From positions 1 through 32,000 of the forward strand of contig MTSL01000190.1 in assembly GCA_002794465.1 (NCBI GenBank): a stretch of DNA of 32,000 nt, given 5' to 3'. Made by a program: the position numbers and the translations under genes. Under the pieces are notes generated by a model, which saw only the letters and a list, made by a program, of their open reading frames with translations, ran no database searches and had not been told where the DNA came from. Source of the DNA: Paramicrosporidium saccamoebae KSL3. Lineage: Eukaryota > Fungi > Cryptomycota. Shown here one piece after another: positions 4,352 to 30,937 of the stretch; the stretch's first letter is position 1, and each line of letters starts with the position of its first letter.

Positions 4352-5725
4352 ATGGAGGAAATTGGCGTGCTGCATTTCCTAAAGGCGCCGAAATGGGCTG
4401 CATTGTGTCCGACAGTAGACTTGGTGGCTGTCTTGGGGGACGAATATTTGGCAGTGTATCGGTTCACTGGAAAGGTGGTTTGGAGCAGGCGAGTGGTACG
4501 GGACGCAGAAATTAAATGGAATGCAGATGGTGCTTCAAACATCAACGTGCTGAGATTGTAGGCACCTTTTTAATCTTGCGCACCGACAGTTCAGTGTGTC
4601 TATATGACAGGGAAAATGGGTGCGAGAGAGCTCTGCCAAGAGAATTTATGGACTGCAACAGCTTCGTAATGGTGCTCCACGATGGCCAGAACGTCAGCAT
4701 ACAGTAACCCATAACTGTCACTAACTCATAGGTCGTGGGATGGCATCGAGTTGGCCGCTCTTAATCACACAAAATTCCACTGTTTGCATGGCAAGTGTAT
4801 ACTCGTTGGTGCAAGCGGCGCCAATCTGGAACTTTACGAAATGACACACGTGGAGCAGTCTACTAGCAACACTACTGATCATGCAAAAGTGTTAAAGGAT
4901 ATTGAGGCGGAAATTGAGCATCTGAACGCTTGTTTCTGCAAAATTCGTGACCAAATTGTCAATTTTGGAGTCGATCAGATTGTGCAAATGTACACCACGG
5001 CTGATCAGAAATTGTTTAGTGGGTTCTCAGAGCGGGTCATGTCGTTGAATACGAGACAACAGGAGAGTCGGTATCATACCGCTCACACAGGCATCAGTTC
5101 TAATCTGAGGAGACTTAGTAAGGGACACGAGGCTGAATGCCAAGAAATGAGACGTCTTATAAGCGATCACCAGGAAGGATGGGATATTTTGGTGCTGTGG
5201 CTCAGAGGAATCCAGCAGTCAGTTCTGGCAGAAGACACGGCCAGGAAATGGCAGTCAAAATGCACCTCAACAACAATGTCCAAGGTGCTAAATATTCTTC
5301 AAAAAAGCACAGATGTGTGGAATGACCAAGTGGTGTGGCTTTGCAACCTGCTGAAAGTGTCCTTTACAGAGCCGCCGATTCGAGTGAATCTAAAGTTTAT
5401 TACCACAATTGAGGAGACTTGTGTTACAAATGTAGTTTCCGATGAACACTACATTGTGACAATCTCCGACTGCAAAATTTCTAGGGTGCACCTGTCCAGC
5501 CTAGAATCATGCAGATGGGACACGATTCAGGGATCACAGATTTTGGATGCCCACAATCTATTGTATAGTAAAGAGGAAGATTTGATCCGGCTGAACTTTG
5601 ACACTTGTGAAAGCAGTACTGTCGGTCATTGGGATTTTGCAAATGTGCCATTCACTGTTTGTTCTGCGAGAAGAACCATTTTAGCTGCTGTCGACAACCG
5701 CCTCCACGCGTTATCCATAGATTAA
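4352..5725 (+). CDS. Anaphase-promoting complex subunit 4-like, divergent; 3 exons, 437 aa
   Basis: N-terminal CPTVDLVAV...VYRFTGKVVW...IKWNADG resembles the APC4 WD40 start; introns 4530-4561 (32 nt) and 4704-4731 (28 nt, CTAAC branch) restore one frame; helical middle region. Confidence 0.6.
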
Positions 5726-6441: not shown

Positions 6442-7959
6442 TTAATAGCTGCGCGCAAAGAGTGTCCATCGCTTGGAGGGCCGACTGCAGGCTGGACAGG
6501 AGAGGTTGGAGAGGATTTCAAAGGGCTGCTCAAACGGTATGCAGAGACATTTGGCACCGGCAATTGCTTGCTCACTTGTGCGCTCTTTAATAGATCGCTC
6601 ACAGGAGGCCTCTTCACACCATGGAATCATGCACATTTTGCCAGCAGCAAGTGCTTGGGTGACAGTGTCCCAATTGGTGGCAGGGATGATACTTTCCAAG
6701 TATTTTTTACGCGCCTTGCTCAACATGCCGTTGTGGATAGACTCCAACTGTAATGTTACAATATTTACAAGATCTGACTTTAACATCCTGCCCTTTGTTC
6801 CATCATATCGCACTGCGTATGAATATGCCTCTGAATCCAACTCTTTTGGCCCGACTTCTATGCGAAGGGGAACACCCTTTAGCTCCCAATGACTAAACTT
6901 CCATCCTGGAGTCTGATTTTCTGCCAAATCTGCCATCGTTCGAATGCCACCAGCATTCAATTGTGCAGCAATTGTCTGACACTCCTGTCTGATACGATTG
7001 GAGATGGCAGAATCGGTCCTGGTTGTGATTCCCACAGGTAACACGACCACTTGGGTTGTAGCAACTCTTGGTGGCAATACCATGCCTTGATCGTCGCCAT
7101 GAACCATGGCCATGACGCCAATCGATCTCGTAGTGAATCCCCATGAATTTTGCCAAGCATACTGCAATTGTCCCTTGCCGTCCTCGAATTTAATGTCAAA
7201 CATTCGTGAAAAATTCTGTCCCAATCCATGGGACGTTGCTCCTTGAATCGCCCGTCCAGCCTCAGGGATAAATGCCTCTACTGTGGTGGTGTATTCTGCG
7301 CCGGCAAATTTCTCCGTTTCTGATTTGACGCCCTCCATGACCGGAACTGCCAGCATCTCCTCAAACACTCGTCGATAGAGTCCCAAAATGTCCCTCACCT
7401 CTGCATCCGCTTCTTCTCTTGAAGCAAAGGCAGAATGTCCCTCTTGCCAGAGAAATTCTCGTGACCGGATGAGCGGCTGGGGGTTCTTAAATTCCCACCG
7501 AACCACATTGCACCATTGGTTCAGTCTAAGTGGGAGGTCCCTCCATGTCTTTATCCACCGTGAATATGCCGGATAAATGGCAGTCTCTGAGGTCGGTCTA
7601 ACCGCCAATCTCACATTCAATGGCGCGTCACCAGCATGAGTCACCCAAGCCACTTCTGGAGAGAATCCTTCAAGGTGAGCTTGCTCGCGTTGAATGGCCG
7701 GTTCCGGGATGAGAAGGGGAAAGTAGGAATCCTGGATGCCACGAGATTTAAATTCGGTATTCATAAAGGCCTGAATATGGGCCCATATGGCGTATCCCCA
7801 AGGACGGAGAATATAGCACCCACTGACGTCGGAGTAGTCCAGCATCTCTGACCGTATCAAACTCTGTGTATACCATTGCGAAAAGTCGTCCCGTTTAGCG
7901 ACTGTAAGACCCAGCTCCTTGGCCTTGATGGCTTGATACAGCCGAACACTGATGCGCAT
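6442..7959 (-). CDS. Prolyl-tRNA synthetase (eukaryote/archaeal type), paralog 1
   Basis: RPTSET, NQWCNVVRWEF, REFLWQEGH, QNSWGFTTRSIG, anticodon-binding domain, Zn-binding Cys and terminal RSY. Confidence 0.97.
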   Translation of the reverse strand: MRISVRLYQAIKAKELGLTVAKRDDFSQWYTQSLIRSEMLDYSDVSGCYILRPWGYAIWAHIQAFMNTEFKSRGIQDSYFPLLIPEPAIQREQAHLEGFSPEVAWVTHAGDAPLNVRLAVRPTSETAIYPAYSRWIKTWRDLPLRLNQWCNVVRWEFKNPQPLIRSREFLWQEGHSAFASREEADAEVRDILGLYRRVFEEMLAVPVMEGVKSETEKFAGAEYTTTVEAFIPEAGRAIQGATSHGLGQNFSRMFDIKFEDGKGQLQYAWQNSWGFTTRSIGVMAMVHGDDQGMVLPPRVATTQVVVLPVGITTRTDSAISNRIRQECQTIAAQLNAGGIRTMADLAENQTPGWKFSHWELKGVPLRIEVGPKELDSEAYSYAVRYDGTKGRMLKSDLVNIVTLQLESIHNGMLSKARKKYLESIIPATNWDTVTQALAAGKMCMIPWCEEASCERSIKERTSEQAIAGAKCLCIPFEQPFEILSNLSCPACSRPSKRWTLFARSY

Positions 7960-8221: not shown

Positions 8222-9748
8222 CTAGTAGCTGCGACCAAAGAGGGTATAGCTCTTTGCGGGCTTGCCACATTGGACACAAAACTTTTCAGTACACTTGGCG
8301 GGCTGATCAAAGGGAATGCAGAGTGATTTGGCACCCATTGCCGGAGCACGCGAATCCACAGCCGCGTCATCAGTAGCTTTGACAGCGCTCCTGTCCTTAA
8401 TTTGATCCTCACAGGTGCTATCCTCACACCATGGGATAAGCACGCAGCACTTGTTATCCAGAGCAGGGGTGACATCCTCCCACTTTTCAACAATCTTGAT
8501 GCAGGCATCATAGGCAGTCTTGGCTTTGGCAAACATTCCACCGTGGATCTCGTCCAAGAGAGCCTTTGCCACCTGTCCAATGTTGTCTAGCGAGACTTGG
8601 CGCTTTTCTCCACTGTATCTGATGCAGGCTCGGGTCTGGTTGGAAGTGAGTTCCTTGGGTCCGACTTCGAATCGCACGGGAACACCCTTCAATTCCCAGT
8701 GATTAAACTTCCAGCCCGGGGTAATGTTGGCTCGCAGATCAGCCTTGGCACGGATGCCGGCAGCAATCAGAGCATTTGCCAACTCGGTACACTTGGCCTG
8801 AATCTTTTCTTCATCCTCAGCCGAGGTCTTTGCAGTGATGCCGACGGGGACAATCACAACTTGGATCGAGGCAACACGCGGAGGAAGGACGAGACCGCTA
8901 TTGTCACTGTGTGTCATCACCATAACACCAATGGAGCGCGTAGTGAATCCCCAAGAGTTTTGCCAAACATATTCAGTCTCGCCATCCTTGCCTTCCACAC
9001 CAATCTTGAACATTTTAGAAAAGTTTTGTCCCAAACAATGTGAAGTACCACCTTGGATTCCACGTCCGACGGAGGGAATAAATCCTTCTACTGTGGTGGT
9101 GTATAAAGCACCGGCAAATCGCTCCTTCTCGCTCTTCATTCCCTTAATCATTGGCACGGCAAGCAAATCTTCATAGACGGCGCGATAGGATTCCAAGGCT
9201 TGAAGCACATCCTGGTCTGCCTCGCTCTTGGTAAGGAAACAAGTGTGTCCCTCTTGCCAGAGAAACTCACGCGAGCGCAAGAACGGCTGGGGATGCTTAA
9301 ACTCCCACCGCACCACATTGCACCATTGATTCATCTTGAGCGGCAAGTCACGATGACTGTTGATCCATTTTGCATATGCCGGGTACATGATTGTCTCGGA
9401 TGTTGGACGGACTGCAATCGGCTCAGGAAGTTCAGAGGAGCCGGACCGTGTGACCCAAGCAACTTCGGGGGCGAATCCTTCTACATGGTCCTTTTCCTTT
9501 TGTAGGGCACCCTGTGAGATGAATAGGGGAAAGTAAGAGTCCTCAACACCGGCCGCTTCAAACCTTTGGCCTAAAAAGGCCTGGATTTCTTTCCAGATTT
9601 TATAACTCCAGGGACGAAGAATATAGCAGCCAGAAATGTCTGAATAATCCATCATTTCAGCACGGAGCAGCACTTGGGTGTACCAGGCGGAGAAATCGAC
9701 TTCCTTTTTGGCTTCAATGCCGAGCTTTGTTTCCTTTTCGTTAGACAT
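8222..9748 (-). CDS. Prolyl-tRNA synthetase (cytosolic type), paralog 2
   Basis: Same motifs as paralog 1; GIQGGTSHCLGQNFSKMF; ends FGRSY. Confidence 0.97.
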   Translation of the reverse strand: MSNEKETKLGIEAKKEVDFSAWYTQVLLRAEMMDYSDISGCYILRPWSYKIWKEIQAFLGQRFEAAGVEDSYFPLFISQGALQKEKDHVEGFAPEVAWVTRSGSSELPEPIAVRPTSETIMYPAYAKWINSHRDLPLKMNQWCNVVRWEFKHPQPFLRSREFLWQEGHTCFLTKSEADQDVLQALESYRAVYEDLLAVPMIKGMKSEKERFAGALYTTTVEGFIPSVGRGIQGGTSHCLGQNFSKMFKIGVEGKDGETEYVWQNSWGFTTRSIGVMVMTHSDNSGLVLPPRVASIQVVIVPVGITAKTSAEDEEKIQAKCTELANALIAAGIRAKADLRANITPGWKFNHWELKGVPVRFEVGPKELTSNQTRACIRYSGEKRQVSLDNIGQVAKALLDEIHGGMFAKAKTAYDACIKIVEKWEDVTPALDNKCCVLIPWCEDSTCEDQIKDRSAVKATDDAAVDSRAPAMGAKSLCIPFDQPAKCTEKFCVQCGKPAKSYTLFGRSY

Positions 9749-16522: not shown

Positions 16523-17884
16523 TTAGTACTTTACCCGAAGTTTCACACCGATCGTGTCTTCACATGTCATGAAAATGTTTGGATTCGGAAATAAACGATA
16601 ACTAGCATCTGGGAATGCGTCACAAAAGTCACTTTCAAAGGGCATTTTTCTGTGAAAGCACGGCTCGTGGGATATTGCTCTGCTACACGCGCCCTCTTCA
16701 TTTGGACCGCTTAGGAACATTGGCAGCTTTTTACTAAGCGCGGTCGCGACGTATCCCAGTGTGGATCTCTTGGTGACTACAAGATCGTCACACACCGCCA
16801 ACATCCAAATGTCATGTACCGCCTCTGAGGCCTGTTTCCTGCCAGTCAGTTGCTTTCCTTCCGAGTAGCGGTGTGTAATATTCCAAAGACGATTATTAGC
16901 AAGGTATTCAGAGACTTCACAGTGGAGAGACGCAACGAAAACGTGCTCCGGTTTGAGGACGTCCAGACAATGGATGGCTGTATTGGCAGAGGCCAGTTTT
17001 ACGAGACCATAAAAATAGCGCGCCTGTAGTCCGATGCGATAGAAATGATGGCTGTCTTTCAGTGTCTGACTGACTTCATCTATGATATAGTCCCGGGGAT
17101 GAAAGAGGTAGGAGAAGAGGGTTGATGCGACGTTTCCATCCGGGAACCATCCCTGCAGGATCTTTGTGTATGTAGGATTCGCAAAAAGTAAGGGGAGAAA
17201 GTAGTGATTCCCACTGATATGAAGGATTTGCACATTTTTCCATCTCTCCATCAGGTCGCCTCCGCAGGCAAGCAGCTGCACTGTAGATTGCTTACTGGAC
17301 TGACTCAGAACCAACCTGACCATTTTGCGAAGCATCTTGGAAGTGACCTCTACGGCAGGCTGCGGTTCATTGTACATTGTGGACCGTATTTTACCCCATT
17401 TTATAGTGTCGGGCATTGACCACTTACTTTTAGGAAAGGGGTTACAAAAGAGGGTGTCAATGTCATAGTCGGAGAAATGCACAATTAACGTGCGATCGGT
17501 CAACAATGCCAGCAAATAAGTCGACAGTAGCGATAATAGACGGTTTCCTAACCCACAAGTGCTGCTCACTGGAGTATAGATAATGTAGCGGTGATCAATG
17601 ACATTGTCATCCTCAACATAACGATACATCTCGGCAGCGAGCATCTCTCCATTCGCGCCAATGCTATGTATCTTTTCGTACCGCTGCATTGCTGCTTGCA
17701 ATTTTCCATTTCCCACCATCTTTCTCGTCTGGTGTTTACAGCCCATGAATTGTGATGGTCGTCTGTATGATTTCGAAAGGCGCTTTCGTTTATTCTCCCA
17801 TCTTGGCTGATATGCATCCGTCAACAATGCTACCACGGTCAACAACTGTAGTGGCAGCAGTATCAAAACAACCCAAGGACCCAT
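16523..17884 (-). CDS. Xyloglucan-fucosyltransferase-like (GT37 fold) type II membrane protein A
   Basis: N-terminal TM; GLGNRLLSLLSTYLLALLTDR, LFCNPFP, YLFHP, RIGLQAR, STLGYVA, CSRAISHEPCFH, CED match plant FUT1-type motifs; first ATG at 17884. Confidence 0.85.
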   Translation of the reverse strand: MGPWVVLILLPLQLLTVVALLTDAYQPRWENKRKRLSKSYRRPSQFMGCKHQTRKMVGNGKLQAAMQRYEKIHSIGANGEMLAAEMYRYVEDDNVIDHRYIIYTPVSSTCGLGNRLLSLLSTYLLALLTDRTLIVHFSDYDIDTLFCNPFPKSKWSMPDTIKWGKIRSTMYNEPQPAVEVTSKMLRKMVRLVLSQSSKQSTVQLLACGGDLMERWKNVQILHISGNHYFLPLLFANPTYTKILQGWFPDGNVASTLFSYLFHPRDYIIDEVSQTLKDSHHFYRIGLQARYFYGLVKLASANTAIHCLDVLKPEHVFVASLHCEVSEYLANNRLWNITHRYSEGKQLTGRKQASEAVHDIWMLAVCDDLVVTKRSTLGYVATALSKKLPMFLSGPNEEGACSRAISHEPCFHRKMPFESDFCDAFPDASYRLFPNPNIFMTCEDTIGVKLRVKY

Positions 17885-17932
17885 GTGAGGGCCCGGAATA
17901 TCAAACAATTAAATACATTTACCCATAGACCA

Positions 17933-20353
17933 ATGTCAACGGACTTTGAGGAGCAACTCATTTCCCAGCTGATTCTGGATTCCTCCAGTCTGGACCAGAC
18001 TGGTGCTGCAGTGTTTAAAACAGTATTTGCCGCGGGAAGACAGACAGAATTCACCAAGGCCCTATCCTCGTATGCCAGTCGGAAGGACAATGAAATTGAA
18101 AAGGTCTGTCATCAGTATTATTACAATTTCGCAAAATCCATCGATGAGCTGCTGGGACTGAGGGAAGAGGCGGCAAAGCTGAGGGCGGCTGTGCTAAAGG
18201 TTTTGGAGGAGCTGGCACAATGTGGGCAACTGCTGTATGATAGCAAGGTGGAAATGCACGAGACGCATAAAATGTTGTATAATACCAAAAGGACGGTTCT
18301 TGCAATGAGCGACTGTCTCAAGGCACTGGAAGTGGCCCAACAAGCGACTCTTGAGATTGTCGACCAGAACTTTGGACAGGCCCTCCGTCTCATTGAGCAA
18401 TTACAAACACAGCTATTGCCGCGCATAGATCAGTTTTCCTTTTCCACCAAACTATATCAATGGATTCCAATACAATTGGACACGGTGCGTAGTTTTGCCG
18501 TGGAAGAGCTCAAAATGTGGCTCAGCAAGGTGAGGGAGCAGAGTGGTGTCATTGGAGAAGTTGCCTTTGGTAGGGCCCAGAAGAGAATTGAGAAATGGAG
18601 GAACCTTTACGAGGGCGTTGCTACACCGACTGCAATCAACCTGGGATTCTCTGTAGCAGAAGATATCAGGAGTGCTGCTGCATACGGCGATTTAGTTGAA
18701 ATGGAGAGGGAGGACGCCGCGTCGATCATTGAGAATGATCAGGTTCAAGTCGATTTTGGACCGTTGTTAAAGGCAGTCCATCTGTTTGACCTCATGAACC
18801 ATCGCGCAGAATTCCAGTCTTTATTTGCTGAATATCGCCGTGCCCAAGCAAAAGTTATATTCGACATCCAGGTGAATCTCAAAGACGGCAAGGCTGATTC
18901 GTTTTCAAACTTTTTGCATAACGTCTGTGGCTTCTTTATCATTGAATACTTTATCGTTCGCAAGCCACAGAAATTTTACTCTCCTGCTCATGTCGAGGGG
19001 TTGTGGGAGACTGCGGTCAATTTGATTAACAATTACGTGCTGGAGTCTCTGGGATGTGGATTAGATCAGAGTGTTTTTATGAAGATCAAGTGGCTTCAAG
19101 TATTCTTCCTTCATGCCATCGAGGTAAAGTTTATACGCAAGCTCCTAGTTGTGTAGGTTTATGATATTTATTCCATCTCTTCCATGCTGGATACGATCCT
19201 GAGCCTTTTCTACCGATATGTAGACTTGACCAAAGGTGAAACTGTCCAAAAAATTAAGGACGCCGCCGTTTCTTGCGAGCTGAAGCCGCTGCCAATTTCG
19301 TCATCAAATTCTATCAGCAAAGCCCAACGGCAGTTTACCTTTATGGCAGAGGATTCCACCTTTGCCAACGCCACTGAATTCCCATTTTCCTCATTCATTA
19401 TGGATGTGTTTGCGGGAATCTCGGAATTCATTAACAACTTTTACGTTTTCCTCGAAGGCGTTCCCCAGCAATCCAGCGAGCTCGATGACATTGCCAAAAA
19501 GGTACCAAATTTCCTACCACGTAATTGTAGAATTGCGACTGGTTATTGGAAGAGGCAGCTAGGTCGTATTTGGAACGCGTAGAAGATGCTAATTTTGATG
19601 CAGTCGTTCAGATGATTCGCGACTTGGACGCTCTGGTCAAGATTTGTCCCGATGTTGCGCGTCTGCTAACTCAACGGCGCTCGCGGTCCAGGACTGTTCC
19701 AGTCCGAATGAGTTCTGGCGAAAGGATAGAACGGGCTTTACATGACATTGAAGCCCATTTGTTCCACATGGTCAACTTGGAGATGGACCGTATTTTCAAA
19801 GCCCATCCGTACAATTTTACTCCAACCGCCAAGCCATCAACGCATGCTCCTCTCATCGCCGGTATGATCAGCCCAAGTGGCGTGATTTTGTAGAATTTGT
19901 CAAGTTTTATCAGAGAACTGCAGAACGACTGGCCACCATGCTTCCGCCTGATTCTATCAAGCAACTGGTCTATAACATGTTCAGTCATTTGTCCACAAAA
20001 CTCACAGAAATGCTTTACGACCAAGCCTTGACGGCCATTAATATGAACTTTGTAGAAGGATTATCTGCCGATCTTGCATATATTCAGAACTTTTCCCAAG
20101 AGCAAGGGCAGGATGCATTGGTTATGGAGACGTTTTCAGAAGTGCAACAGTTGATGAATCTGATGACGGCGGAGCAAGTACACGAATATTTGGACCCCAT
20201 TGTACGGAATCGAAAATACCCGAGCCTACGCTCCAATGATCTCATCCCCGTCCTCCAAAAGTAATGGTGTTGCCGTGATTAGATTTTTGTAGAGTGACAG
20301 AGCCGGTGGATAAGAAGCGCGTCTTTGAAGACATGCTACTCCTTCTTCGTTAG
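17933..20353 (+). CDS. SEC15: Exocyst subunit Sec15; 5 exons, 764 aa
   Basis: Introns 19124-19156, 19502-19530, 19862-19893, 20261-20292 give a continuous frame; IEKVCHQYYYNFAKSIDELL, VDFGPLLKAVHLF, EYLDPIVRNRKY. Confidence 0.9.
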
Positions 20354-20608: not shown

Positions 20609-23600
20609 ATGCCGCCCAAATTCAAAAAGGGCATTCGTGCGGTGGCCGAAGGAGAGGAGGACGAGGCATTAGTTAATGTTAAACGCTTTGCAGAGATCTC
20701 ACGTCGCGCTGAGATTGACTCGCAGATGGGATTTTCTTCCTTCTCTGGCGGGACACGCATTGGTTGGATGCTTAATATGCAATCTGTAGCATCAAGAGTT
20801 CCTTGTCTGATGGGTGTAGACCTTTGTGATGGACAGTGAATGGCCGAGTGGGAGGTCGGCTGTCGACTATTACTTTATGTGTGAAGATGGTTCCTGTTTC
20901 AAGGCAACCATGACATACAGCCCCTACTTTTTTGTCAAATGCAAGGCATCACCCTCGCTCTGTATCTTAATATGTAGAAAGGAACGGAGAATGAGGTGGA
21001 AGAATATTTGCGACGGAGATTTGAGAACACCATCGAGTCGATGCAACGAATGATGAAAGAGGACCTTGATTTACCCAACCATCTGGCTGGAGTGCAGCGC
21101 TGCTATCTCCAACTCTGCTTCCGCAATACCTCGGACCTCTTGTCAGTTCGCAAAGTGCTCCTTCCCGCAGCCACTCGGAATGGCGAGGGATACAAAGAGG
21201 CCGTCATGGCACAGGATGAACCAGTTTCCAAACGAAGTGAACATGGAGCCCTGTCCAATATTGTGGGCCTGCGGGAGTATGATATTCCGTATCATTTGCG
21301 TGTGGGCATTGATCGTGATGTGCGGGTTGGGCTTTGGTATACAGTCACATCTCACGGCCCCACTACAACTCTCACGAGGCTCACCACCAAAGATGTTCGT
21401 CCCGATCCGGTCGTATTTGCATTTGACATTGAAACGAGCAAGATGCCGCTCAAATTTCCCGATGCCGCCCAGGATCATATTATGATGATTTCATACATGG
21501 TCAACGGACGAGGCTTCCTCATTGTCAATCGCGATATTGTTAGCGAGGACATTGAAAACTTTGAATACACGCCAAAGCCCGATTTCCCCGGTGTCTTTAC
21601 CATCTTTAATGTGGCCGATGAACAAGCACTACTACAAAAATTCTTTTCGCATATCCAACTCATTAGACCGCATGTATTTGTCACTTACAATGGCGATTTC
21701 TTCGATTGGCCGTTTATTGAGACTCGTGCAGCATCATATGGGATGGTAATGGAGTCGATGATTGGGATTGCAAAAAACTCGCAGGGAGAGTATTGTGGCA
21801 GTTATTGTGTGCACATGGACTGTTTTTGTTGGGTCAAGCGAGACTCGTATCTGCCGGCAGGTAGTCATGGACTCAAAGCCGTCTGCTCCATCAAGTTGGG
21901 CTATGATCCCTTGGAACTGGATCCCGAGCTGATGACTCCCTTGGCGTCTCAGGATCCCCATACTTTGGCAAATTACTCTGTCTCAGATGCAGTGGCCACA
22001 TATTACTTATACATGAAGTATGTCCATCCATTCATCTTTTCCCTCTGTAACATTATTCCCCTAATGCCTGATGAGGTGTTACGGAAGGGCACCGGGACTC
22101 TGTGTGAGACCCTTCTGATGGCTGAAGCATACAAAGCCACCGTTATTATGCCGAATAAATACGAAGAGGCTCGCGAAAAGTTTCACAAAGGCCACCTATT
22201 GGAGAGTGAGACTTATATTGGCGGTCATGTGGAGGCATTGGAGGCTGGCGTGTATCGGAGCGACTTTACATACAAATTCAAGATTAACCCCGAAACGATG
22301 CATCAACTGGTTAATGATCTGGACCGGGCACTTAAATTCTTCTTGGAACACGAAAGTCACACCCCGCTTGCCGACGTGCGCAATTATGAAGAGGTTTACG
22401 AAAGCATCAAGGGAATGCTTTTGGCTCTTGCGGAAACGCCTACTAAGCACGATCGTCCGTTAATTTACCACTTGGATGTGGGGTCCATGTATCCCAACAT
22501 TATCCTTACTAATCGTCTACAACCCTCCGCCATGGTGAGCGATGCAACCTGTGCAGTGTGTGACTTTAACCGACCCGGAAAGCAATGTCAGCGAGCCATG
22601 ACCTGGTCCTGGCGTGGCGAATATTACAGTGCCAAGCAAAATGAATACAAGATGATCAAGAAGCAACTTGAAGGCGAGAGATTCCCGTCCAAGCACGTTC
22701 CCAACACTACTGTCGCCTTTCATGAACTGTCCCAGGTGGAACAGAGTGCTCTGATCAAAAAGCGTCTGGCTGATTACAGTCAAAAGGTTTATCGACGCAC
22801 TCGGCAAAATGAAGTGATCACAAAGACGTCGGTGGTGTGTCAGCGTGAAAATTCCTTTTATATTGATACAGTGAAAAGCTTCCGCGACCGCCGCTATGAC
22901 TATAAGAATCTGCAAAAGGTTTGGAAGAAGAAGCTGGATGAGGCAACCAAGGGAAAGGATCCCACCAAGGTGGAAGAGGCCGGAAAATTAGTCGTCCTGT
23001 ACGATTCGTTGCAACTTGCGCACAAGTGCATCCTCAATTCATTTTACGGTTATGTGATGCGCAAGGCGGCCCGATGGTATTCCATGGAGATGGGAGGGAT
23101 TGTTTGTGAGACAGGGGCGGCAATTATCACTCTCGCCCGACAGCTGATTGAGCAGTTTGGACGTCCACTTGAGCTGGACACGGATGGGATCTGGCTCATG
23201 TTGCCCTCGGGATTTCCCCAAAACTTTTGTTTTGATCTCTATTCGGGAAAAAAGGTGCATTTTGCATATCCCTGTGTGATGCTTAATCATTTGCTATTTG
23301 ACAAGTTTACCAATCATCAATATCAAACTCTCGTGGGACCACAAAGCTATACGGTGAGCAGTGAAAATTCCATCTTTTTTGAAATCGACGGACCGTACAA
23401 GGCAATGGTGATCCCCTCTTCCACCGAGGAGGGCCGACAGCTGAAGAAACGATATGCCGTCTTCAATGAGGACGGCACATTGGCCGAACTAAAGGGCTTT
23501 GAAATCAAGAGAAGAGGAGAGTTGAAGCTGATCAAGATTTTCCAATCGCAAATATTCAAGACATTCTTGGCGGGCACCAACTTGGTAGAGTGTTACAAAG

Positions 23601-26600
23601 AAGTAGCCACGGTGGCAAATTATTGGTTGGACATTTTGTACTCTCGCGGCGCCAATCTGCACGATTCCGAGCTAATTGAGTTGATTTCGGAGAATAGGAG
23701 CATGTCCAAGGCATTGGAAGACTATGGTGCCCAAAAATCCACCTCCATCTCCACGGCCAAACGACTGGCCGAGTTTCTTGGCGATCAGATGGTAAAGGAC
23801 AAGGGTCTGGCTTGCAAATTTATCATCTCTGCCAAACCAGCCGGCCTGCCCGTTACCAACCGAGCCATTCCCGTGGCCATCTTCTCCGCCGCCCCTGAGA
23901 TCCGTCGTCATTATCTCTCCAAATGGCTAAAGGACAGCTCCCCTGCCGTTGACATTCGTGATATTATCGACTGGTCGTACTATTTGGAGCGCATTGGGAC
24001 AATGATCCAAAAGCTCATTGTGATTCCAGCTGCGTTGCAATCAGTAGCGAACCCAGTGCCAAGGGTCATCCCGCCTGAATGGCTAAAGAGCGGAACGGCA
24101 GGCAAGCCAGTGCAAAAGGAACAAAGAAAGATTACTGACATGCTGGCGGCCATGCGCACAGTCGACATGGAAGATACTGTTCTGATGACAACAAAAGTTG
24201 CATTTAAACGTCCAGCTGAGGTTCTAGTCACGGCAAACGATCCAGTGGTTTTGGCCGAGATTGATCCGGAAGTGGACTATTCCGCTTGGGTTGCGTCTAG
24301 GAAAGACCACTGGCGACTGCTGAAATCTAAATTGAAGAATAGCGAGTCGGTAGGAAAGAAGAAGAATAATACGATTGGATCCATGTTGAACCAGGATCGG
24401 GTCAATGTATTACGGACGCCATGGGAAATAGTGGCTATCCAGGAAACATTGGTGCCGGGGGAATTTCAACTATGGGCCATGGTTGCAGATACGATGCGAT
24501 CGTTCAAATTGACGTGCCCTCGTCGGGTTTACGTGGGTACCAAGGAGCCACTAGCCGATCTGGGCAGCCGGGTTCATTTCCGTCTTCCCGAGGGATTGTC
24601 CGCCAGTCACCTCTATGAGCTGGTAATGCCGGAGCGGGTTTTCCAGGAAGAATTCATCTCCAACTCGGCGGCGCTCCTTGATCCCATGTTGGAGGGCATT
24701 TGGGAGGCCAACATTCCACTAAACTTTCAACTGTACACTCGGCTGGGAGCAGTGGTGTCAGTGGTGAAGGAGGCGCAACGGGAAACCTCTGTTGACCGTG
24801 TCTTTACCCCTGACGAATTAGTGTTCCGTGCTGAATTGCCCTATTTACAAGGGGAAAGGATTGTATATGGATATTATGGTGCGTTGAGCGCTGATAATCG
24901 ACATGTCATGTTGTTAGCATTCAGCAATTCGCCCATTCTGCGGATTTTTGTGACGGATGATGGAATGAGGAGACAGCTGACTGGACCAAAGGCGCTTCTA
25001 GCTATGGCGTTGAAGAGTCACGAATTGCTGCCCGCTCCCTTTACTATCGATGAGGAGCTTGTTCAATATGAAATTGATTATTTCCCCGACTACGAGTCTG
25101 CTGTAAAGACTCTGCAACGCGCGATTAATAGCTATTTGGATGATCGACCTCTGCCGACCATCATGTTGACACTTTCCTCAACCAAGGACATTCCTGCATT
25201 CTCCCGATTGCCCTGTGTGCCCATCCCCTCGTGGCATGGACAATACATCTTCCCGCCCCTCGATTGGCAACGAAGCTCTGCCCGTCGTCTATTGGAATAT
25301 TACGTGCAGATCAATAGCTGGCTGGCCGACCGTATTGCATTGGCACGCTTTTCTCATGTTCCATTGGCCAATTTGCCTGCCAAAACGGACGTGATGAGCT
25401 TTGTATCGGATATATTCTTTGCACGCATGCATCGCCAACAGGGATATCTGCTACCTTGGAACCAGAATGACAACATTTCCTGGCGTAATGATTCAACCGA
25501 TTACGAGTTGCACATTACTCCCAGTGCGGGAATTGACACTCCGGGATTATACCGTCACGTATCGGTGGATTTTGATGTATCGGCAATGCCAATCAATGCG
25601 ATTCTCGAGTACGGACACATTAGTCCCGATGAAAACACGCCGCCCATGTTCACCATCCTAAAAACGCTACTCACCAATTGGCTAAAGGAGACGATCAAAG
25701 GCAATCCGCTGGCTGCCCAACTCGTAGAGAGTGCCTTCCGATGGATTCGATCGGGAGAATCCCAATTATTGGCGTCATCGGTGCTGCAGCGCCTCAATGT
25801 GACAATGCAGCGTGCACAACAGCGTCTTGTGGAGCATTTGCGCCAACTCGGCTGTACAGTGGTGCATGGTGACCATCATCGTTTGGTAATTGCAACGGCA
25901 AAGGACCATGTGGAGAATGCCAAGGCATTTGTAGAGTATTTACTGAATGATTTGAAAAGAACTGATGGTTTGGCATGGATTACCCTCCATCCGGCCATGT
26001 ATTGGCAGAGTATCTTGTGGATGGATAAATCCAATTTTGTTGCCTTTCCCTGCACTGAGGACGGGAACAGTGAGGTAACACTGAGGTTGAATTTGGGAGA
26101 CTATTTGCCGCCGATCCTTCATCGACCCTTTACTGTAATGGTTGCTGAATATCTTGCGCAAATATCCACAACGATCCCAACGGCTTCCCAAACAAAGATC
26201 GAACCAATGAAGGCGGCCGAATTGTTTGATGAGGAAGCTGATGATGCGGAGATGGAGCAATGTGAGGAGCTGATCAGTGCAGAGTATAAGACTAAGTTCC
26301 TGTCGGTAGTGCGTGAGGTGCAGCGTCTACTATCAGGGGCGCCCATATCGTCGGAGGATGCCCTACGGAAAGCATTCCCTGTCCGTGTTGGGTCCCACGT
26401 CGAGCTGACTGATGCTCCACTTACCTTTGTCAAGTTCCTGGGAGCTCTACTATCCCTGGACAAGATCTGCGCCCCAGCCATCTTCAATCTCGTTAAACAG
26501 GCATATGCGCTACTCGGAGTCCGTGAATTCAGCGAAGCAACCGTCTTTGTGGACCCGTGTCGCTCCTTTGTCCTGCCCGCCGTCATCTGTCCCGGCTGCA

Positions 26601-26941
26601 ATCACACCCGCGATCTTGATTTCTGTCGGGATGTCGATGTACTCGCCGCCATGTCCCGTCCCGTCCATTCCTTTTCCTGTTCCTGTGGTCGTCTCTATGA
26701 TTTGGTCGAGATAGAGGCAGAGATTGTGGCTGTCCTGGCTGAGGAGGCTGAACGATATCAAAGACAGGATCTGACGTGTTCGTGCGGCGTGGTGGCAGAG
26801 TTGATGGGATGCAAGTGTGCCGGAAAATACCGACTAGAGGGCTTGGATGCGATGGAGCGGGTGCGTGTGGTCACTCGGGTGGCCAGGGCGCTTGATCTGC
26901 AGTCCCTGTCCGCATACATTTCAAGCAACTATAATCTGTAA
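20609..26941 (+). CDS. POL2: DNA polymerase epsilon catalytic subunit; 3 exons, about 2088 aa
   Basis: Exons 20609-20785, 20820-20945, 20978-26941; exonuclease DIETSK, polymerase LDVGSMYPN and ELDTDG, CysX (CAVC...C...CQREN), inactive second PolB half, C-terminal Cys clusters. Confidence 0.97.
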
Positions 26942-27015
26942 ACAATCATTTATATTAGTGAGTGGTGGGGGGGATGAGAGAGATAGAGAGCATATATTAG
27001 TGTAAAGGATCTTGG

Positions 27016-27227
27016 TGTCGCGTAGTGGGGATAATACCACGGCCCAGTTTAGGTGAGAAGAGAATTTATTCAGTCAATCCAACGACCCATTTATAGTCTC
27101 ACAAATAACATAATCCCCAAATGGTAAGATATAGATCTCATTATCCTTCATCGATTGTTCTGATTATCCCTTCTCCAAACTAGAGAACTATTTCCAAAAG
27201 ACATACTAATCAGTCTTCTACGTCACA
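27016..27227 (-). mobile_element. Solo LTR-like element, copy 1 (212 bp)
   Basis: TTGG|TGTCGCG...CGTCACA|TTGG: TG...CA termini with a perfect 4-bp flanking duplication; TATAAAT then AATAAA on the minus strand; inverted homolog at 28224-28448. Confidence 0.75.
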
Positions 27228-27363
27228 TTGGTACCTATGCAAGTTTGTGTTTACATCTGTTTAACTAATAGTAAGCAAATTGCCATCTACTTGCCAAGAC
27301 ACATAGTATTCCTCTTACCAAGCACCATCACGTTTATTGAACTGCTCCTTCACTACACCAGTC

Positions 27364-28079
27364 CTAATCCTCCAGCCCAACTCGTTCCAAGATCTTGTCG
27401 AGGGTCCCTCGCTGTGCCACCTTGACTACCTTTTCTGCGGGTAATGCCTTCCTTGGCACTCTCACCACCAACACCCCCAAAGTACTCCACGCTTCCACTC
27501 GTTCTTGGTCCGCATCTTCGGGTAGCTCAAACACTTCTTCCACACTCCGCTCATAACATGCACGACGTGAACCCCGGGAGAAGCATTCCTCGTGATCGCC
27601 AAAGACAAGCAGCTGGTTGCGGGTCAAATGTATATGCAGCGACGAGATGGGCAGACCGGGACAATCCAGAAAGACAATGTAGTCGTCTGGCAGCACTCTG
27701 ACCTGAAAGTTTCTGCGATCAGTACGAAGGCTGTCCATGCGAACTCTAAAAGTCTCATTAGCACAGAAAGGCGGTACCCAGTAAGTTGTTGACGTACACG
27801 CGTGAGAATATCAGAAGCCTTGTCCTTTGTCCAGCTGACTGCCTCCTGGGCCCGTTCCGCCACGTCTTGGGTTCTGTCTTTGGTCCAATGCATTGCATCA
27901 CTATTTAGTCAGTAATGATTCAACGTGGAATACCTTGTGGCATCTTTGACTGCTTGGGAAGCATCCCTCAAGCCCACAGATGGTGATTCCACATATTCTC
28001 CAGGATGCATCAATGTCCAGGATTGCAATGCGAAAATGATGGCTGTACTTGCAACAAGTGCTGGAGCTGTAAGTATCAT
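27364..28079 (-). CDS. Small heat-shock protein (alpha-crystallin domain) with N-terminal hydrophobic leader and LEA-like repeats; 3 exons, 216 aa
   Basis: Exons 28079-27934, 27900-27778, 27745-27364; introns of 33 nt (GTATTC...ACTGAC..ATAG) and 32 nt (GTACCG...GCTAAT..TTAG) give one open frame; ACD motifs DCPG, FELPEDAD..V.A....GVLVVRVPRK. Confidence 0.8.
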
Positions 28080-28574
28080 GTTGTTGGATGCGAGCCAAAT
28101 CGAACTCTTTAGTACAATGTTATTGAACGCGAGCTAAATCGAACCCCTTAGTATAACGTTGTTGGATATGAGCTAAATTGAACTCTAGTAAAATATTGTT
28201 GGATATGAGCTAGATCACAAGTCCGTGACGTAGAGGGTCGATTAGTTGGGTATTTGAGGATGGTTCCCTAGGCTGGAGAAAGGATAATCAAAACAATCGA
28301 TGGAGGATAATGAGATCTATATCTTTACCATTTGGGACTGTTACTTTATTTGTGAGACCATAAAAGGGTCGTTGGATTGACTGAATAAACTCTCTTCTCG
28401 TCTCTTCCCGCCCGACAAAGTCCGTGGTTTTATCTCCACTACGCGACAAGTCTGCTCCTTAGTATAATGTTGTTGGTGTTGAGCTAAATTGAATTCTAGT
28501 AAAATGTTGTTGAATATATGCTAGATTGAACTCCTTCATACAGTGTTGCTGAATGTGGACCAAATTGAACATTT
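28072..28574. repeat. 37-39 bp minisatellite (about 7 units) interrupted by the solo LTR
   Basis: AGTA.AATGTTGTTGGAT..GAGCTAAAT.GAACTC(TT) units at 28072, 28111, 28150, 28187 and 28461, 28498, 28537. Confidence 0.88.
28224..28448 (+). mobile_element. Solo LTR-like element, copy 2 (225 bp)
   Basis: AGTC|CGTGACG...CGCGACA|AGTC: 4-bp flanking duplication, 5' T>C variant of TG; CATAAAA 28359, AATAAA 28384, pyrimidine tract; roughly 85-90% identical to copy 1 over the core by eye. Confidence 0.75.
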
Positions 28575-28606
28575 ACTCCTTAATACACTTGCTTTATTAG
28601 TACTGT

Positions 28607-29314
28607 CTACAGATAGGGACCAACTCGACATTCAGGTGTAATGCACACCTGTCCCACAATATTAGGCTTGATTGCTATATATCCGTCGTGTTCCTTTAGC
28701 ACTGACCAGAACAAGCCCTCATAAACCAAGACGTTCGTGTCCGCAAACCGTAGTGATCCACCAAGCCAGCGTTTTAGCAGACTAATCTGCGCACCGAGGG
28801 TGAGAGTCACAAAGACGGCAGCCTTTACTGCCGCTGACCAATAGACGGTGAAGAGCCCGTAATCCACTGCAGTCATGATTAGAGGCGGGATGATTGCTAC
28901 CATACAGCAAATACCGTCCAACAGGGCCATTAGGGCGGTTCCCGGGAAGGACCAGGTTTGCAAATCAAAGAGCCTTTGGTCCTTTTTGCCCTCGGGATGC
29001 TGAACTAGGGTCTCCAAGTTCCATACTGCTGCCGACGAGCCATCTGAAAGACGCACCTGTGAAAAGAAGAGATGCATTTGCTCGATTATTCCTTGCTTAT
29101 CTCCATTATTGACTGAATCGCCGACATGCAGTTTACCCTGGAACGCATGGAAGATCATCATCCTCACGAACAACATGAAAAGGAGCCCGCTGATCATTCC
29201 CAAGTTTACCAATCCCTTGCCATAGATCTGTGTCGCTTTCCATAGTTCCCATCCCTGTTGTCCGGCAATAAAGATCGAAGCGGCGTCTATCGCAACCCCG
29301 ATCCACCACCACAT
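28607..29314 (-). CDS. Small MscS-like membrane protein with two tandem TM+beta-domain modules, 235 aa
   Basis: KLHVGDSVNNGDKQGIIEQMHLFFSQVRLSDGSSAAVWN fits the MscS middle-domain pattern; second module GSLRFAD...LFWSVLKEHDGYIAIKPN; ATG 29314 chosen to avoid antisense overlap with the next gene. Confidence 0.6.
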   Translation of the reverse strand: MWWWIGVAIDAASIFIAGQQGWELWKATQIYGKGLVNLGMISGLLFMLFVRMMIFHAFQGKLHVGDSVNNGDKQGIIEQMHLFFSQVRLSDGSSAAVWNLETLVQHPEGKKDQRLFDLQTWSFPGTALMALLDGICCMVAIIPPLIMTAVDYGLFTVYWSAAVKAAVFVTLTLGAQISLLKRWLGGSLRFADTNVLVYEGLFWSVLKEHDGYIAIKPNIVGQVCITPECRVGPYL

Positions 29315-29392
29315 CAGCCGACCAACCAGAAGTTGCTTCCTAAAATGGAAATGACTGACCAATGAATTTGAGCCCAGCTGACAAACATTAGG

Positions 29393-30937
29393 ATGGAACG
29401 GCGGTGGCAATTCATTCTTACACAATTCGTCCTGCCATTTCTGGTGGGAGTGGGGATTGCCGTGGTTATAGTAACATGGCGGACGAACGTCCCTCGGCAC
29501 GATGATGAACCGGCCATGATGGCACAGCCGTCAATGATTATTGAGCCAATGGCCCAATTCGAAGAGCTCAAAGTGGAGGAGGATCAGCAAATTGCAGCCG
29601 AACCAAAGATTGAGGAGGAGCCTGGACCAGCCGAGTTTACGCCAATGAACACACCTCCTAAGCCCGACGATGCGGCGAAACGAAAACTGCGCGCAGAGCG
29701 AGCCGCCAAGGGCAGCTGGACCTGCCGACACCGCTCCACCAAGTGGCTTGAACAAAACTCGCAGTATCTCCCATCCGAGTTACGTGAATATCTCCAACGG
29801 TACAACCGACTTCATGACAAGTCGCTGAAAGAGTTGTCAGTCGAAGAGGCTTTTCAGACCAGCCTGACGAGTGTCAAAAATAATGTGCGATATATAGTAT
29901 GGCGGCCGGTAGGAGAGGATTTGGCGGGACAGATTCTTAGTCTCACCTCTGCCTTCCTGCTAGCATTACTGACCGATCGAATCTTGCTCATCAATCTTCC
30001 CTATGTAAGACTATTCTTCTGCGAGCCATTCACGCGCTCCTCCTGGATCTTTCCCCAGAAACACCTGGCAGATTTAAATAATTTCACAGTGATGCGAAAC
30101 GCCTTGCAGACGCGCACTTTACTGCGGGTTACGCGTCTCAAGCTCAAAGACGGATTCCAGGATGACGACTCGATCTTTCTAACTTGCAATGGAAACCTCA
30201 AGACGATGATAGCGCATTCCCAAATCCTACTGGTCGAGTCACCAGTTGGATTTGTGGAATTATTAGCTGCAAATCCGTCTCATCGTAACCGTCTCAACCA
30301 CCTGTTCCAGGATCGTCCTATCTACACTCTTCTCATGCACCATTTGCTGCACCCATCAAACGACATGTGGTTCCGGATTATTGACACATATCATGTGCAC
30401 TACACTAATGATGTTGAGCGTCCCTCCCGTCTCGGTGTCCATTTGCCCGTTGTTGGAACTGACGCGGTTGAATCCTTCAAACTCCGCCACAAGATGCAAT
30501 GCGCCCTCCGGAAGCATATCGACTTGCCGACCACACAGGGCCGCATTATCTACTACAGTCCCTCAGGGCCGACCAACGACCCCCGATTGTGGGCAAAGAG
30601 ACAGCTGAGTATTCCGATGGGATACAAATTGGTGACGTCAACAGCAGAGAATTCCAAAAAGGGCTACCTGGGCGACTGGCGACGGCTCCTCACAGATATA
30701 TGGATGGGTAGTTGGACGCATGTATTTGTGATAGGCGAAATGACTCAGGCGGCACTGGCGACGCATTACTACCGGGCAAAGGAGTCGTGGGTACTGGAGC
30801 AACAAGCCGAGGGAGAGGATTGCAACTATGTTGCAATGTCGTCTGCATACCTACTGCCAGTGCCTGAAAATTTGACTGATTGTCCAGCCTTTCGGCAAGA
30901 ATGGCGTGCCAAATACAAAAAAGTCAAATCTCAATAA
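29393..30937 (+). CDS. GT37-fold fucosyltransferase-like type II membrane protein B (degenerate active site)
   Basis: N-terminal TM and stalk; VRYIVWRP...LSLTSAFLLALLTDRILL, FCEPFTRSSW, LLHPSNDMW; the GLGNR and GIQxR motifs are replaced by DLAGQ and GVHLP. Confidence 0.75.
   Translation: MERRWQFILTQFVLPFLVGVGIAVVIVTWRTNVPRHDDEPAMMAQPSMIIEPMAQFEELKVEEDQQIAAEPKIEEEPGPAEFTPMNTPPKPDDAAKRKLRAERAAKGSWTCRHRSTKWLEQNSQYLPSELREYLQRYNRLHDKSLKELSVEEAFQTSLTSVKNNVRYIVWRPVGEDLAGQILSLTSAFLLALLTDRILLINLPYVRLFFCEPFTRSSWIFPQKHLADLNNFTVMRNALQTRTLLRVTRLKLKDGFQDDDSIFLTCNGNLKTMIAHSQILLVESPVGFVELLAANPSHRNRLNHLFQDRPIYTLLMHHLLHPSNDMWFRIIDTYHVHYTNDVERPSRLGVHLPVVGTDAVESFKLRHKMQCALRKHIDLPTTQGRIIYYSPSGPTNDPRLWAKRQLSIPMGYKLVTSTAENSKKGYLGDWRRLLTDIWMGSWTHVFVIGEMTQAALATHYYRAKESWVLEQQAEGEDCNYVAMSSAYLLPVPENLTDCPAFRQEWRAKYKKVKSQ

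Follow-up and report, generated by a model that had tools for sequence, protein, structure and literature searches.

A three-exon gene for a predicted secretory-pathway small heat shock protein with a hendecad-repeat helix in Paramicrosporidium saccamoebae

What does a gene encode when a list of open reading frames (ORFs) displays only its last part? This question is raised by the minus strand of a 32,000-nucleotide stretch of the Paramicrosporidium saccamoebae KSL3 genome (contig MTSL01000190.1, positions 1 to 32,000; referred to here as the window), where the plain ORF list of the locus holds a single 124-codon piece, 27738-27364. A sequence-only reading of the window had recognized this piece as no more than the Hsp20 core of a small heat shock protein (sHsp), and had proposed that a hidden 216-amino-acid protein joins a hydrophobic leader and late embryogenesis abundant (LEA) repeats to an alpha-crystallin domain (ACD). 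The gene proves to be longer than listed, as had been proposed, and the leader, the 11-residue repeats and the ACD are all recovered, whereas membership in the LEA family is not. On balance, and with moderate confidence, we read the product as an sHsp of the secretory pathway, in which a long amphipathic helix that binds membranes or clients serves as the N-terminal region; localization and function are what we infer from these parts.

Gene model and family of the window protein

Starting at the ATG at 28079-28077 on the minus strand, removal of two GT..AG micro-introns yields a 651-nucleotide (nt) frame of 216 codons that closes with the TAG stop at 27366-27364. Without splicing, the frame from the same ATG runs into a stop after 56 codons. 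The nearest in-frame stop on the 5' side is a TAG at 28136-28134, also on the minus strand, and the interval between the two is free of ATG codons, in agreement with the choice of 28079 as the first ATG in the earlier reading. The gene is laid out as follows.

28134 to 28136, minus strand: in-frame upstream TAG, which makes ATG 28079 the first possible start
27934 to 28079, minus strand: exon 1, from Met1 to the first two bases of Ser49; leader and start of the amphipathic arm
27901 to 27933, minus strand: intron 1, 33 nt, phase 2, GTATTC...TACTGAC...AATAG, in which TACTGAC is branch-point-like
27778 to 27900, minus strand: exon 2, residues 49-90; both W-containing 11-mers and the conserved SD(I/L)LxR(V/M)RQ(Q/R)LxG
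27746 to 27777, minus strand: intron 2, 32 nt, phase 2, GTACCG...GCTAATG...TTTAG
27364 to 27745, minus strand: exon 3, residues 90-216 and the TAG stop; ACD and C-terminal extension

A word-indexed first search of 5.8 billion proteins returned three relatives (P0001, P0002 and P0003). Two of these, P0001 (244 amino acids) and P0003 (319 amino acids), have the leader, the helical arm and the ACD in single uninterrupted ORFs on their contigs, and are 38-45% identical to the window protein with coverage up to 100%. The third, P0002 (165 amino acids), is a truncated gene call; an upstream ORF on its contig, L003, supplies the leader, and a 245-amino-acid protein results when micro-introns of 35 and 36 nt are joined out. 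The 36-nt intron interrupts the same codon in the same phase as window intron 2, after RQ(Q/R)L(T/V)G, and the 35-nt intron, of phase 2, falls in the same region as window intron 1. At the protein level, removal of intron 1 restores the family motif S-DAMHWTKD, that is, [DE]A[VIM]xW[TS][KR][DE], and the residues at the junction of intron 2, LTG/V (the slash marks the junction), match the uninterrupted LTG-I and VMG-I of the intronless P0001 and P0003. The leader in exon 1 and the W motif that follows it are conserved in P0001, P0003, P0151 and the spliced L003 product.

Judging from the other genes at hand, the source genome typically has micro-introns of 32-36 nt that begin with GTA and end with TAG. 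In the Sec15 gene of the window, a 33-nt intron with GTA..TAG ends (19124-19156) occupies the site that a 36-nt intron takes in the syntenic contig L003; the length of the window intron is divisible by three, and the TAG at its end is read as a stop in frame. The gene for DNA polymerase epsilon (Pol epsilon) holds a candidate 34-nt intron at about 20778-20811 and a further candidate site at about 20947-20978, and one of these candidates appears to begin with GC, not GT. ORF-based gene calling misses the sHsp family because introns of 32-36 nt split the gene.

The simplest alternative is that the gene consists of the 124-codon ORF alone and encodes a cytosolic sHsp core, the upstream 'exons' being chance ORFs. 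The ATG at 27738 does open an ORF that is visible to a prokaryote-style gene caller, and several database relatives have been called likewise (P0002, P0008). Against this, family members conserve the residues encoded by exons 1 and 2, which run straight on into the ACD in the intronless orthologs, and the truncation of P0002 is a gene-calling artifact of the corresponding introns, which leaves this alternative barely credible. The splice sites, the intronless orthologs and the intron position shared with L003 all speak for the two canonical micro-introns and the one 216-residue frame that had been proposed, and we take the predicted three-exon model to be correct.

Gene order gives a second view of the relationship. 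L003 and the window have in common the order ferric reductase, PheRS-beta, CBS, DUF1749 and Sec15, and a tail-to-tail pairing of the sHsp gene with Pol epsilon is found in both, as well as in the contig of a distant member, P0015. The tail-to-tail pairing and the shared gene order therefore mark these sHsp genes as orthologs. The Pol epsilon-sHsp block itself is inverted between the two contigs (20996-28079 in the window, 9690-12522 in L003): L003 reads Sec15 > sHsp > <PolE, and the window reads Sec15 > PolE > <sHsp.

The extent of the family was taken from an exhaustive HMMER search with a family profile against 1.84 billion representatives. Ten proteins matched at E<1e-30 with the whole profile covered, and a second tier of about 18 proteins, at 1e-24 to 1e-10, covered the arm as well. 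In total, the architecture is shared by some 10 close clusters and some 25 that are more distant, almost all from metagenome or SRA assemblies. Two distant members come from chytrids, KAI9034100.1 (Hyaloraphidium curvatum) and KAJ3282316.1 (Borealophlyctis nickersoniae), and both bear the annotation 'hypothetical protein'. The Pol epsilon of the window is 87-97% identical to metagenomic proteins only; its identity then falls to 60-63% for several fungal phyla, 59-61% for animals and 55-59% for plants. In a neighbor-joining tree (a single-gene distance tree without support values) the window clade stands beside the sampled Fungi, which makes the source an opisthokont, probably an early-diverging fungus, and speaks neither for nor against Rozellomycota or microsporidia.

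The only annotation names met among family members are 'HSP20 family molecular chaperone IbpA' and 'hypothetical protein', and a literature search returned plant endoplasmic reticulum (ER) sHsps only, with no description of an sHsp-LEA fusion or of a fungal ER sHsp. The earlier statement that no described family has such an architecture is thus right insofar as none has been described or annotated, and wrong if taken to mean that the window protein stands alone: the architecture is not unique to the window, yet it is undescribed and mis-annotated wherever it is present. Judged by these matches, the subfamily is previously undescribed and lineage-restricted, belonging to early-diverging fungi and uncultured relatives.

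Alpha-crystallin domain and amphipathic arm

The mature part of the protein consists of the arm, the ACD and a C-terminal extension, with the following features.

27778 to 27974, minus strand: amphipathic arm with 11/3 periodicity, residues ~36-90 (~55 residues), spanning intron 1
27445 to 27714, minus strand: ACD, residues ~101-190, from Pfam, the AlphaFold2 (AF2) model, Foldseek and the PDB profile search
27556 to 27585, minus strand: Cys144...Cys153, a putative disulfide, flanking the turn of a long beta-hairpin (HEEC-x8-C-x-ER)
27418 to 27426, minus strand: C-terminal I/V-x-I/V sHsp oligomerization motif, V197-K-V199; the column is [VI]-x-[VI] across the family
27367 to 27405, minus strand: conserved C-terminal tail TLDKILERVGLED, subfamily-specific, LDKILExVGLE; AF2 helix at 204-211

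The Pfam HSP20 profile (PF00011) matches residues 108-195 with 42.3 bits against a cut-off of 20.8 (E=8.7e-11), and all 22 relatives scanned pass the same cut-off. Statements on structure rest on an AF2 run with a 25-sequence alignment, a run with four sequences having given a predicted local distance difference test score (pLDDT) of 50.7. Residues 101-190 are modeled with pLDDT 92-98. The best Foldseek matches of the model are the ACDs of alphaA- and alphaB-crystallin (target-normalized template modeling score 0.81-0.88, root-mean-square deviation 2.0-2.4 A), and the best sequence matches in the PDB profile search are bacterial and plant sHsps, to E=1e-15. Profile score, model confidence and structural similarity together uphold the Hsp20 core that the earlier reading had recognized.

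With canonical cytosolic sHsps and alpha-crystallins (PF00011; PDB 2Y1Z, 4M5S, 3L1F, 5J7N, 1GME) the window protein shares the seven- to eight-stranded beta-sandwich of the ACD, the V-x-V motif and the AxxxxGVL motif, here A175-WSTL-G180-V-L and conserved in the family alignments; its long beta6+7-type hairpin is like that of metazoan ACDs. It differs from canonical sHsps in its hydrophobic leader, in having a single long helix as its N-terminal region, in Glu160, and in the cysteines that flank the hairpin. Eight positions of the tail do not vary among the four closest members: D206, I208, L209, E210, V212, G213, L214 and E215. Cys144 and Cys153 are each at least 90% conserved over the 25 sequences, with a loop of 6 to >60 residues between them, and the AF2 strands 134-147 and 150-163 place residue 144 opposite residue 153. 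From this model a Cys144-Cys153 disulfide can reasonably be inferred, and the conserved pair fits an oxidizing compartment.

The arm is modeled as one long helix (residues 40-89, pLDDT 61-73). Over the whole segment its hydrophobic moment peaks at 98 degrees, equivalent to 11 residues per 3 turns (z=3.8, p<=0.002), and the peak lies at 96-100 degrees in 19 of the 24 family linkers. Self-similarity of the window linker reaches z=3.1 at lag 11, with the best lag at 18 (11+7); family-wide, lag 11 ranks first (mean z 3.3), ahead of 22, 7 and 18 in that order. The core unit, [DE]A[VIM]xW[TS][KR][DE]K, carries a conserved Trp in each repeat and is present in two copies in the window protein, at residues 51 and 69 (11+7 apart), and as four exact tandem 11-mers in P0009. 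Charged residues make up 33% of the arm and hydrophobic ones 20%, with Ala, Lys, Asp and Thr abundant, and the length of the arm ranges from about 50 to 170 residues across the family. The amphipathic 11-mer repeats of the sequence-only reading are therefore real, given the lag-11 signal, the 98-degree moment and the two copies of the motif.

Their assignment to group-3 LEA proteins did not survive a Pfam scan. LEA_4 (PF02987) was unmatched at E<=10 both by the window protein and by the arm alone; 21 relatives, scanned with limits of E<=10, E<=1 or E<=0.1, gave no match either, which makes 22 members in all. Group-3 LEA proteins are highly hydrophilic, disordered in solution and essentially free of Trp and Cys, and Trp in the core repeats is atypical for LEA. 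The window protein has in common with them a periodicity of 11 residues, an amphipathic helix rich in Ala, Lys, Asp and Thr, and a plausible part in protection against water stress; it differs in lacking detectable LEA_4 homology, in its Trp-bearing repeats and in the fusion of the arm to a folded ACD. Some LEA proteins carry signal peptides, and bdelloid rotifers have ER-targeted LEA proteins.

What the family does match in Pfam, below threshold, is YtxH, Apolipoprotein and DUF7553. The best YtxH (PF12732) scores are 14.9 bits for the window arm and 20.5 bits for P0011, short of the gathering threshold of 37.5. YtxH-like bacterial stress proteins, apolipoprotein-type helices and ATP synthase subunit b all resemble the window protein in having a hydrophobic helix followed by a long, charged amphipathic helix, and their sub-threshold hidden Markov model matches to the window family fall at register-compatible positions. 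These matches stay below the curated cut-offs, however, and are probably compositional, and none of those families has an ACD.

The earlier proposal of a true gene fusion between a group-3 LEA protein (LEA_4) and an sHsp, acting as a dedicated desiccation chaperone, draws on periodicity and amphipathicity that are real, and on the likeness of ASQAVKDATSD and, in P0012, GAEKAKATVKD to the LEA-3 pattern. It could also appeal to the repeat block that stands C-terminal to the ACD in some distant members and so behaves as a movable module. The missing LEA_4 match even at permissive E-values and the Trp in the core repeats argue against such a fusion. In addition, an arm of about 50-170 residues looks like local amplification of a family-specific 11-mer and not like an acquired domain, and no LEA-only homolog was recovered in the 1.84 billion representatives. 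We consider a LEA fusion very improbable. The arm is best described as a LEA-like or apolipoprotein-like hendecad helix that probably arose from local repeat amplification in an sHsp lineage; by the profile searches, the protein resembles LEA in physical terms only and is not a LEA_4 family member.

The movable position of the repeats is an observation in its own right. Weaker family matches have the same leader, W motif and Cys pair, with Ala/Lys/Thr-rich repeats C-terminal to the ACD; such a block occurs in some distant members (P0032, P0033, P0037, P0062, P0070), both chytrid proteins included, and the repeat module has therefore apparently been gained or moved more than once. KAI9034100.1 and KAJ3282316.1 are like the window protein in their signal-peptide-like leader, W motif, ACD with C...CxER and Ala/Thr/Lys-rich amphipathic repeats, and differ in the C-terminal position of the repeat block and in a similarity that is at ACD level only (E 2.6e-8 and 7.3e-7).

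The leader and predicted secretory targeting

28029 to 28079, minus strand: signal-peptide-like leader, residues 1-17 (MILTAPALVASTAIIFA), with Ala17 as putative -1 and Ile15 as -3 residue

The hydrophobic leader spans residues 1 to about 22 of the window protein. Charged residues are absent from positions 1-25 in the four closest members, where Kyte-Doolittle hydropathy over 19 residues is 1.8-2.05, so the leader is uncharged and hydrophobic as first described. It is followed by a conserved LQSW..HP in the window protein, an instance of the W motif, which in most members is Pro-ended, SW..(W)..P. At the aligned position, second-tier members have textbook signal peptides with a basic (K/R) n-region, an h-region of 14-20 residues and small residues at -3 and -1. 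The aligned leaders of distant members read MRLSLLLALPLASS/LLEW, MLRLFVLLLLVSLSSA/LNW and MRWLETFILVLCASLAAA/LFEW, the slash here marking the putative cleavage site, and the cleavage contexts of the second tier include ...LASS/LLEW, ...LSSA/LNW, ...SKA/LLEW and ...LAAA/LFEW. Across the family the -1 residue is A or C and the -3 residue I/V/T/S/L/A, directly ahead of the conserved W-x-x-P motif; the window clade has an invariant Ala in the -1 column and I/V/T/L/S at -3 (IFA/LQSW, VFA/WSS, TAA/LSS). Whether the leader is a signal peptide, as expected of an ER-resident sHsp, was judged by sequence heuristics alone (charge, hydropathy, the -1 residue and the distant leaders). The classical signal peptides of more distant members support entry into the ER.

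Several observations weigh against a secretory-pathway sHsp. The leader of the window clade has neither a basic n-region nor a helix-breaking Pro/Gly c-region, and could for this reason be an uncleaved anchor. No ER-retention motif was found in the window protein, which ends ...VGLED; its relatives end in GLEEL, GLEDVR, GLETPVIA, GLE or GLDSEN, with EDEL in P0006 only. The number of cysteines in the window protein is odd (three), and N-glycosylation sequons are absent. The beta7 arginine, equivalent to R120 of alphaB-crystallin, is replaced by Glu160, which is invariant in the window clade and aligns with R, K, H, Q or E in distant members, so that classical chaperone behavior is not guaranteed; this arginine is common in sHsps and not obligatory. 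Finally, no heat-shock element was found within 600 nt upstream of the sHsp gene, which is not decisive, and a scan of the upstream region for stress response elements gave single AGGGG or CCCCT words only.

The first of these points leads to the main rival, in which the leader is an uncleaved signal anchor and the product a single-pass membrane protein, in which the helix forms a stalk or rests on the bilayer and the ACD stays at the surface of the ER, the plasma membrane or an organelle. Consistent with an anchor, the uncharged run in the window clade is 24-32 residues long with a hydrophobic core of about 18-20 residues, and the leader is fairly well conserved within the clade, for example as MI(V/L)xTT(Q/H)...VFAW. 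The N-terminal half of the family profile also weakly matches ATP synthase subunit b, a transmembrane helix plus a long helix (E ~3e-5), in addition to its sub-threshold similarity to YtxH, a family with a transmembrane and an amphipathic helix, but both matches may be compositional. Summed Hessa insertion energies are marginal, from -0.2 to +2.8 kcal/mol, and distant orthologs have short h-regions of 14-20 residues and classical cleavage contexts at the aligned site. We take the anchor seriously and judge it unlikely.

The hydrophobic N-terminus might instead lead to another membrane outside the secretory pathway, for instance to lipid droplets or, in mitochondria, to the outer membrane or the intermembrane space. 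An amphipathic 11/3 helix is a typical feature of proteins binding to lipid droplets and membrane surfaces, the hydrophobicity of the leader is moderate, and the Cys pair would also suit an oxidizing intermembrane space. The window clade, however, has no basic residues flanking the hydrophobic segment and no amphipathic basic presequence, and the distant members resemble plain secretory signal peptides, which makes such a destination improbable. Plastid-type bipartite targeting, prompted by the aromatic residue after the leader, was considered and rejected: the region behind the leader is acidic and helical and is conserved within the mature protein, and the source is an opisthokont.

In a secretory-pathway sHsp, the reading that we favor, the leader would act as an ER signal peptide, probably cleaved after Ala17, and the mature protein would fold in the oxidizing secretory pathway, where Cys144 and Cys153 would staple the beta5/beta6+7 hairpin. 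ACD dimers would assemble via the V-x-V motif, and the protein could work as a holdase that needs no ATP, either in the ER lumen or further along, in the vacuole, the cell or spore wall, or the medium; the more distant sites are considered because a conserved ER-retention signal is missing. The long hendecad helix would take the place of the usual sHsp N-terminal region and most likely form the client- or membrane-binding surface, and the arm may gain structure on membranes or on drying, like the 11-mers of LEA, apolipoprotein and synuclein type. Of the destinations named at the outset for this chaperone (ER, spore wall or host), a secretory one is plausible from the signal peptides of distant members and the small -1 residue, and nothing was found that points to a host-directed role.

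The nearest known counterparts are plant sHsps of the ER class, such as wheat TaHSP23.9 and rice OsHSP23.2, which carry a signal peptide (PMC7069362). As in these, the window protein has an N-terminal signal peptide, here a putative one, then an N-terminal region, an ACD and a C-terminal extension, the layout of a secretory-pathway sHsp; it differs by its hendecad arm, the conserved Cys pair, the extra C-terminal helix and the lack of an ER-retention tetrapeptide. Plant sequences are absent from the family-specific matches, and the leader was therefore probably acquired independently of plant ER sHsps.

A wider proposal can be put forward only tentatively, as possible and somewhat doubtful: that a dedicated sHsp family, secreted or luminal, exists in early-diverging fungi and their uncultured relatives, with a disulfide-stapled ACD and LEA-like hendecad helices on its N- or C-terminal side, and that its members would work as extracytoplasmic chaperones and membrane protectants (in the ER lumen, or the cell or resting-spore wall) under drying or other stress. 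To our knowledge, sHsps outside plants are treated as cytosolic, nuclear or mitochondrial chaperones. If true, the proposal would add an extracytosolic sHsp class from organisms other than plants, would take ATP-independent chaperoning into the secretory pathway, or to the cell surface, of fungi, and would offer a natural, testable case of an sHsp core joined to a helix of the desiccation-protectant type. With the gene model and a few motifs (W-x-x-P behind the leader, HEEC...CxER, and V-x-V plus LDKILExVGLE), the family can be annotated correctly in metagenomes and chytrid genomes.

Upstream repeats and other genes of the window

A 39-bp tandem repeat of 3.6 copies (28078-28216; minus-strand unit approximately GTTCGATTTAGCTCGCATCCAACAACATTGTACTAAAGA) overlaps the start codon of the sHsp gene, and a further set of about three diverged copies is found after 240 bp in the upstream direction, at about 28459-28575. 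The repeat occurs nowhere else in the window and holds no heat-shock element, and no comparable repeat stood out in the approximately 340 bp read upstream of the L003 ortholog. It could be a promoter or 5' untranslated region element, or the remnant of a small mobile element. Both tRNA and Rfam scans of the window were empty, and the 240-bp spacer between the two repeat arrays is therefore no RNA gene of a known type. A 297-codon ORF on the minus strand (28607-29500), rich in hydrophobic segments, adjoins the upstream side of the sHsp promoter region; this ORF and one of 324 codons at 4751-5725 on the plus strand have no Pfam match.

Two further gene pairs were observed in the window. Two GT37 'xyloglucan fucosyltransferase'-like genes, at 16523-17908 on the minus strand and 29393-30937 on the plus strand, are present in this non-plant opisthokont genome, and the first of them, the copy that was searched, has homologs in metagenome assemblies only. 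Two intact prolyl-tRNA synthetase genes stand in tandem on the minus strand (6442-7959 and 8222-9748) with 55% mutual identity; this pair is an old tandem duplication, perhaps of a cytosolic and an organellar copy.

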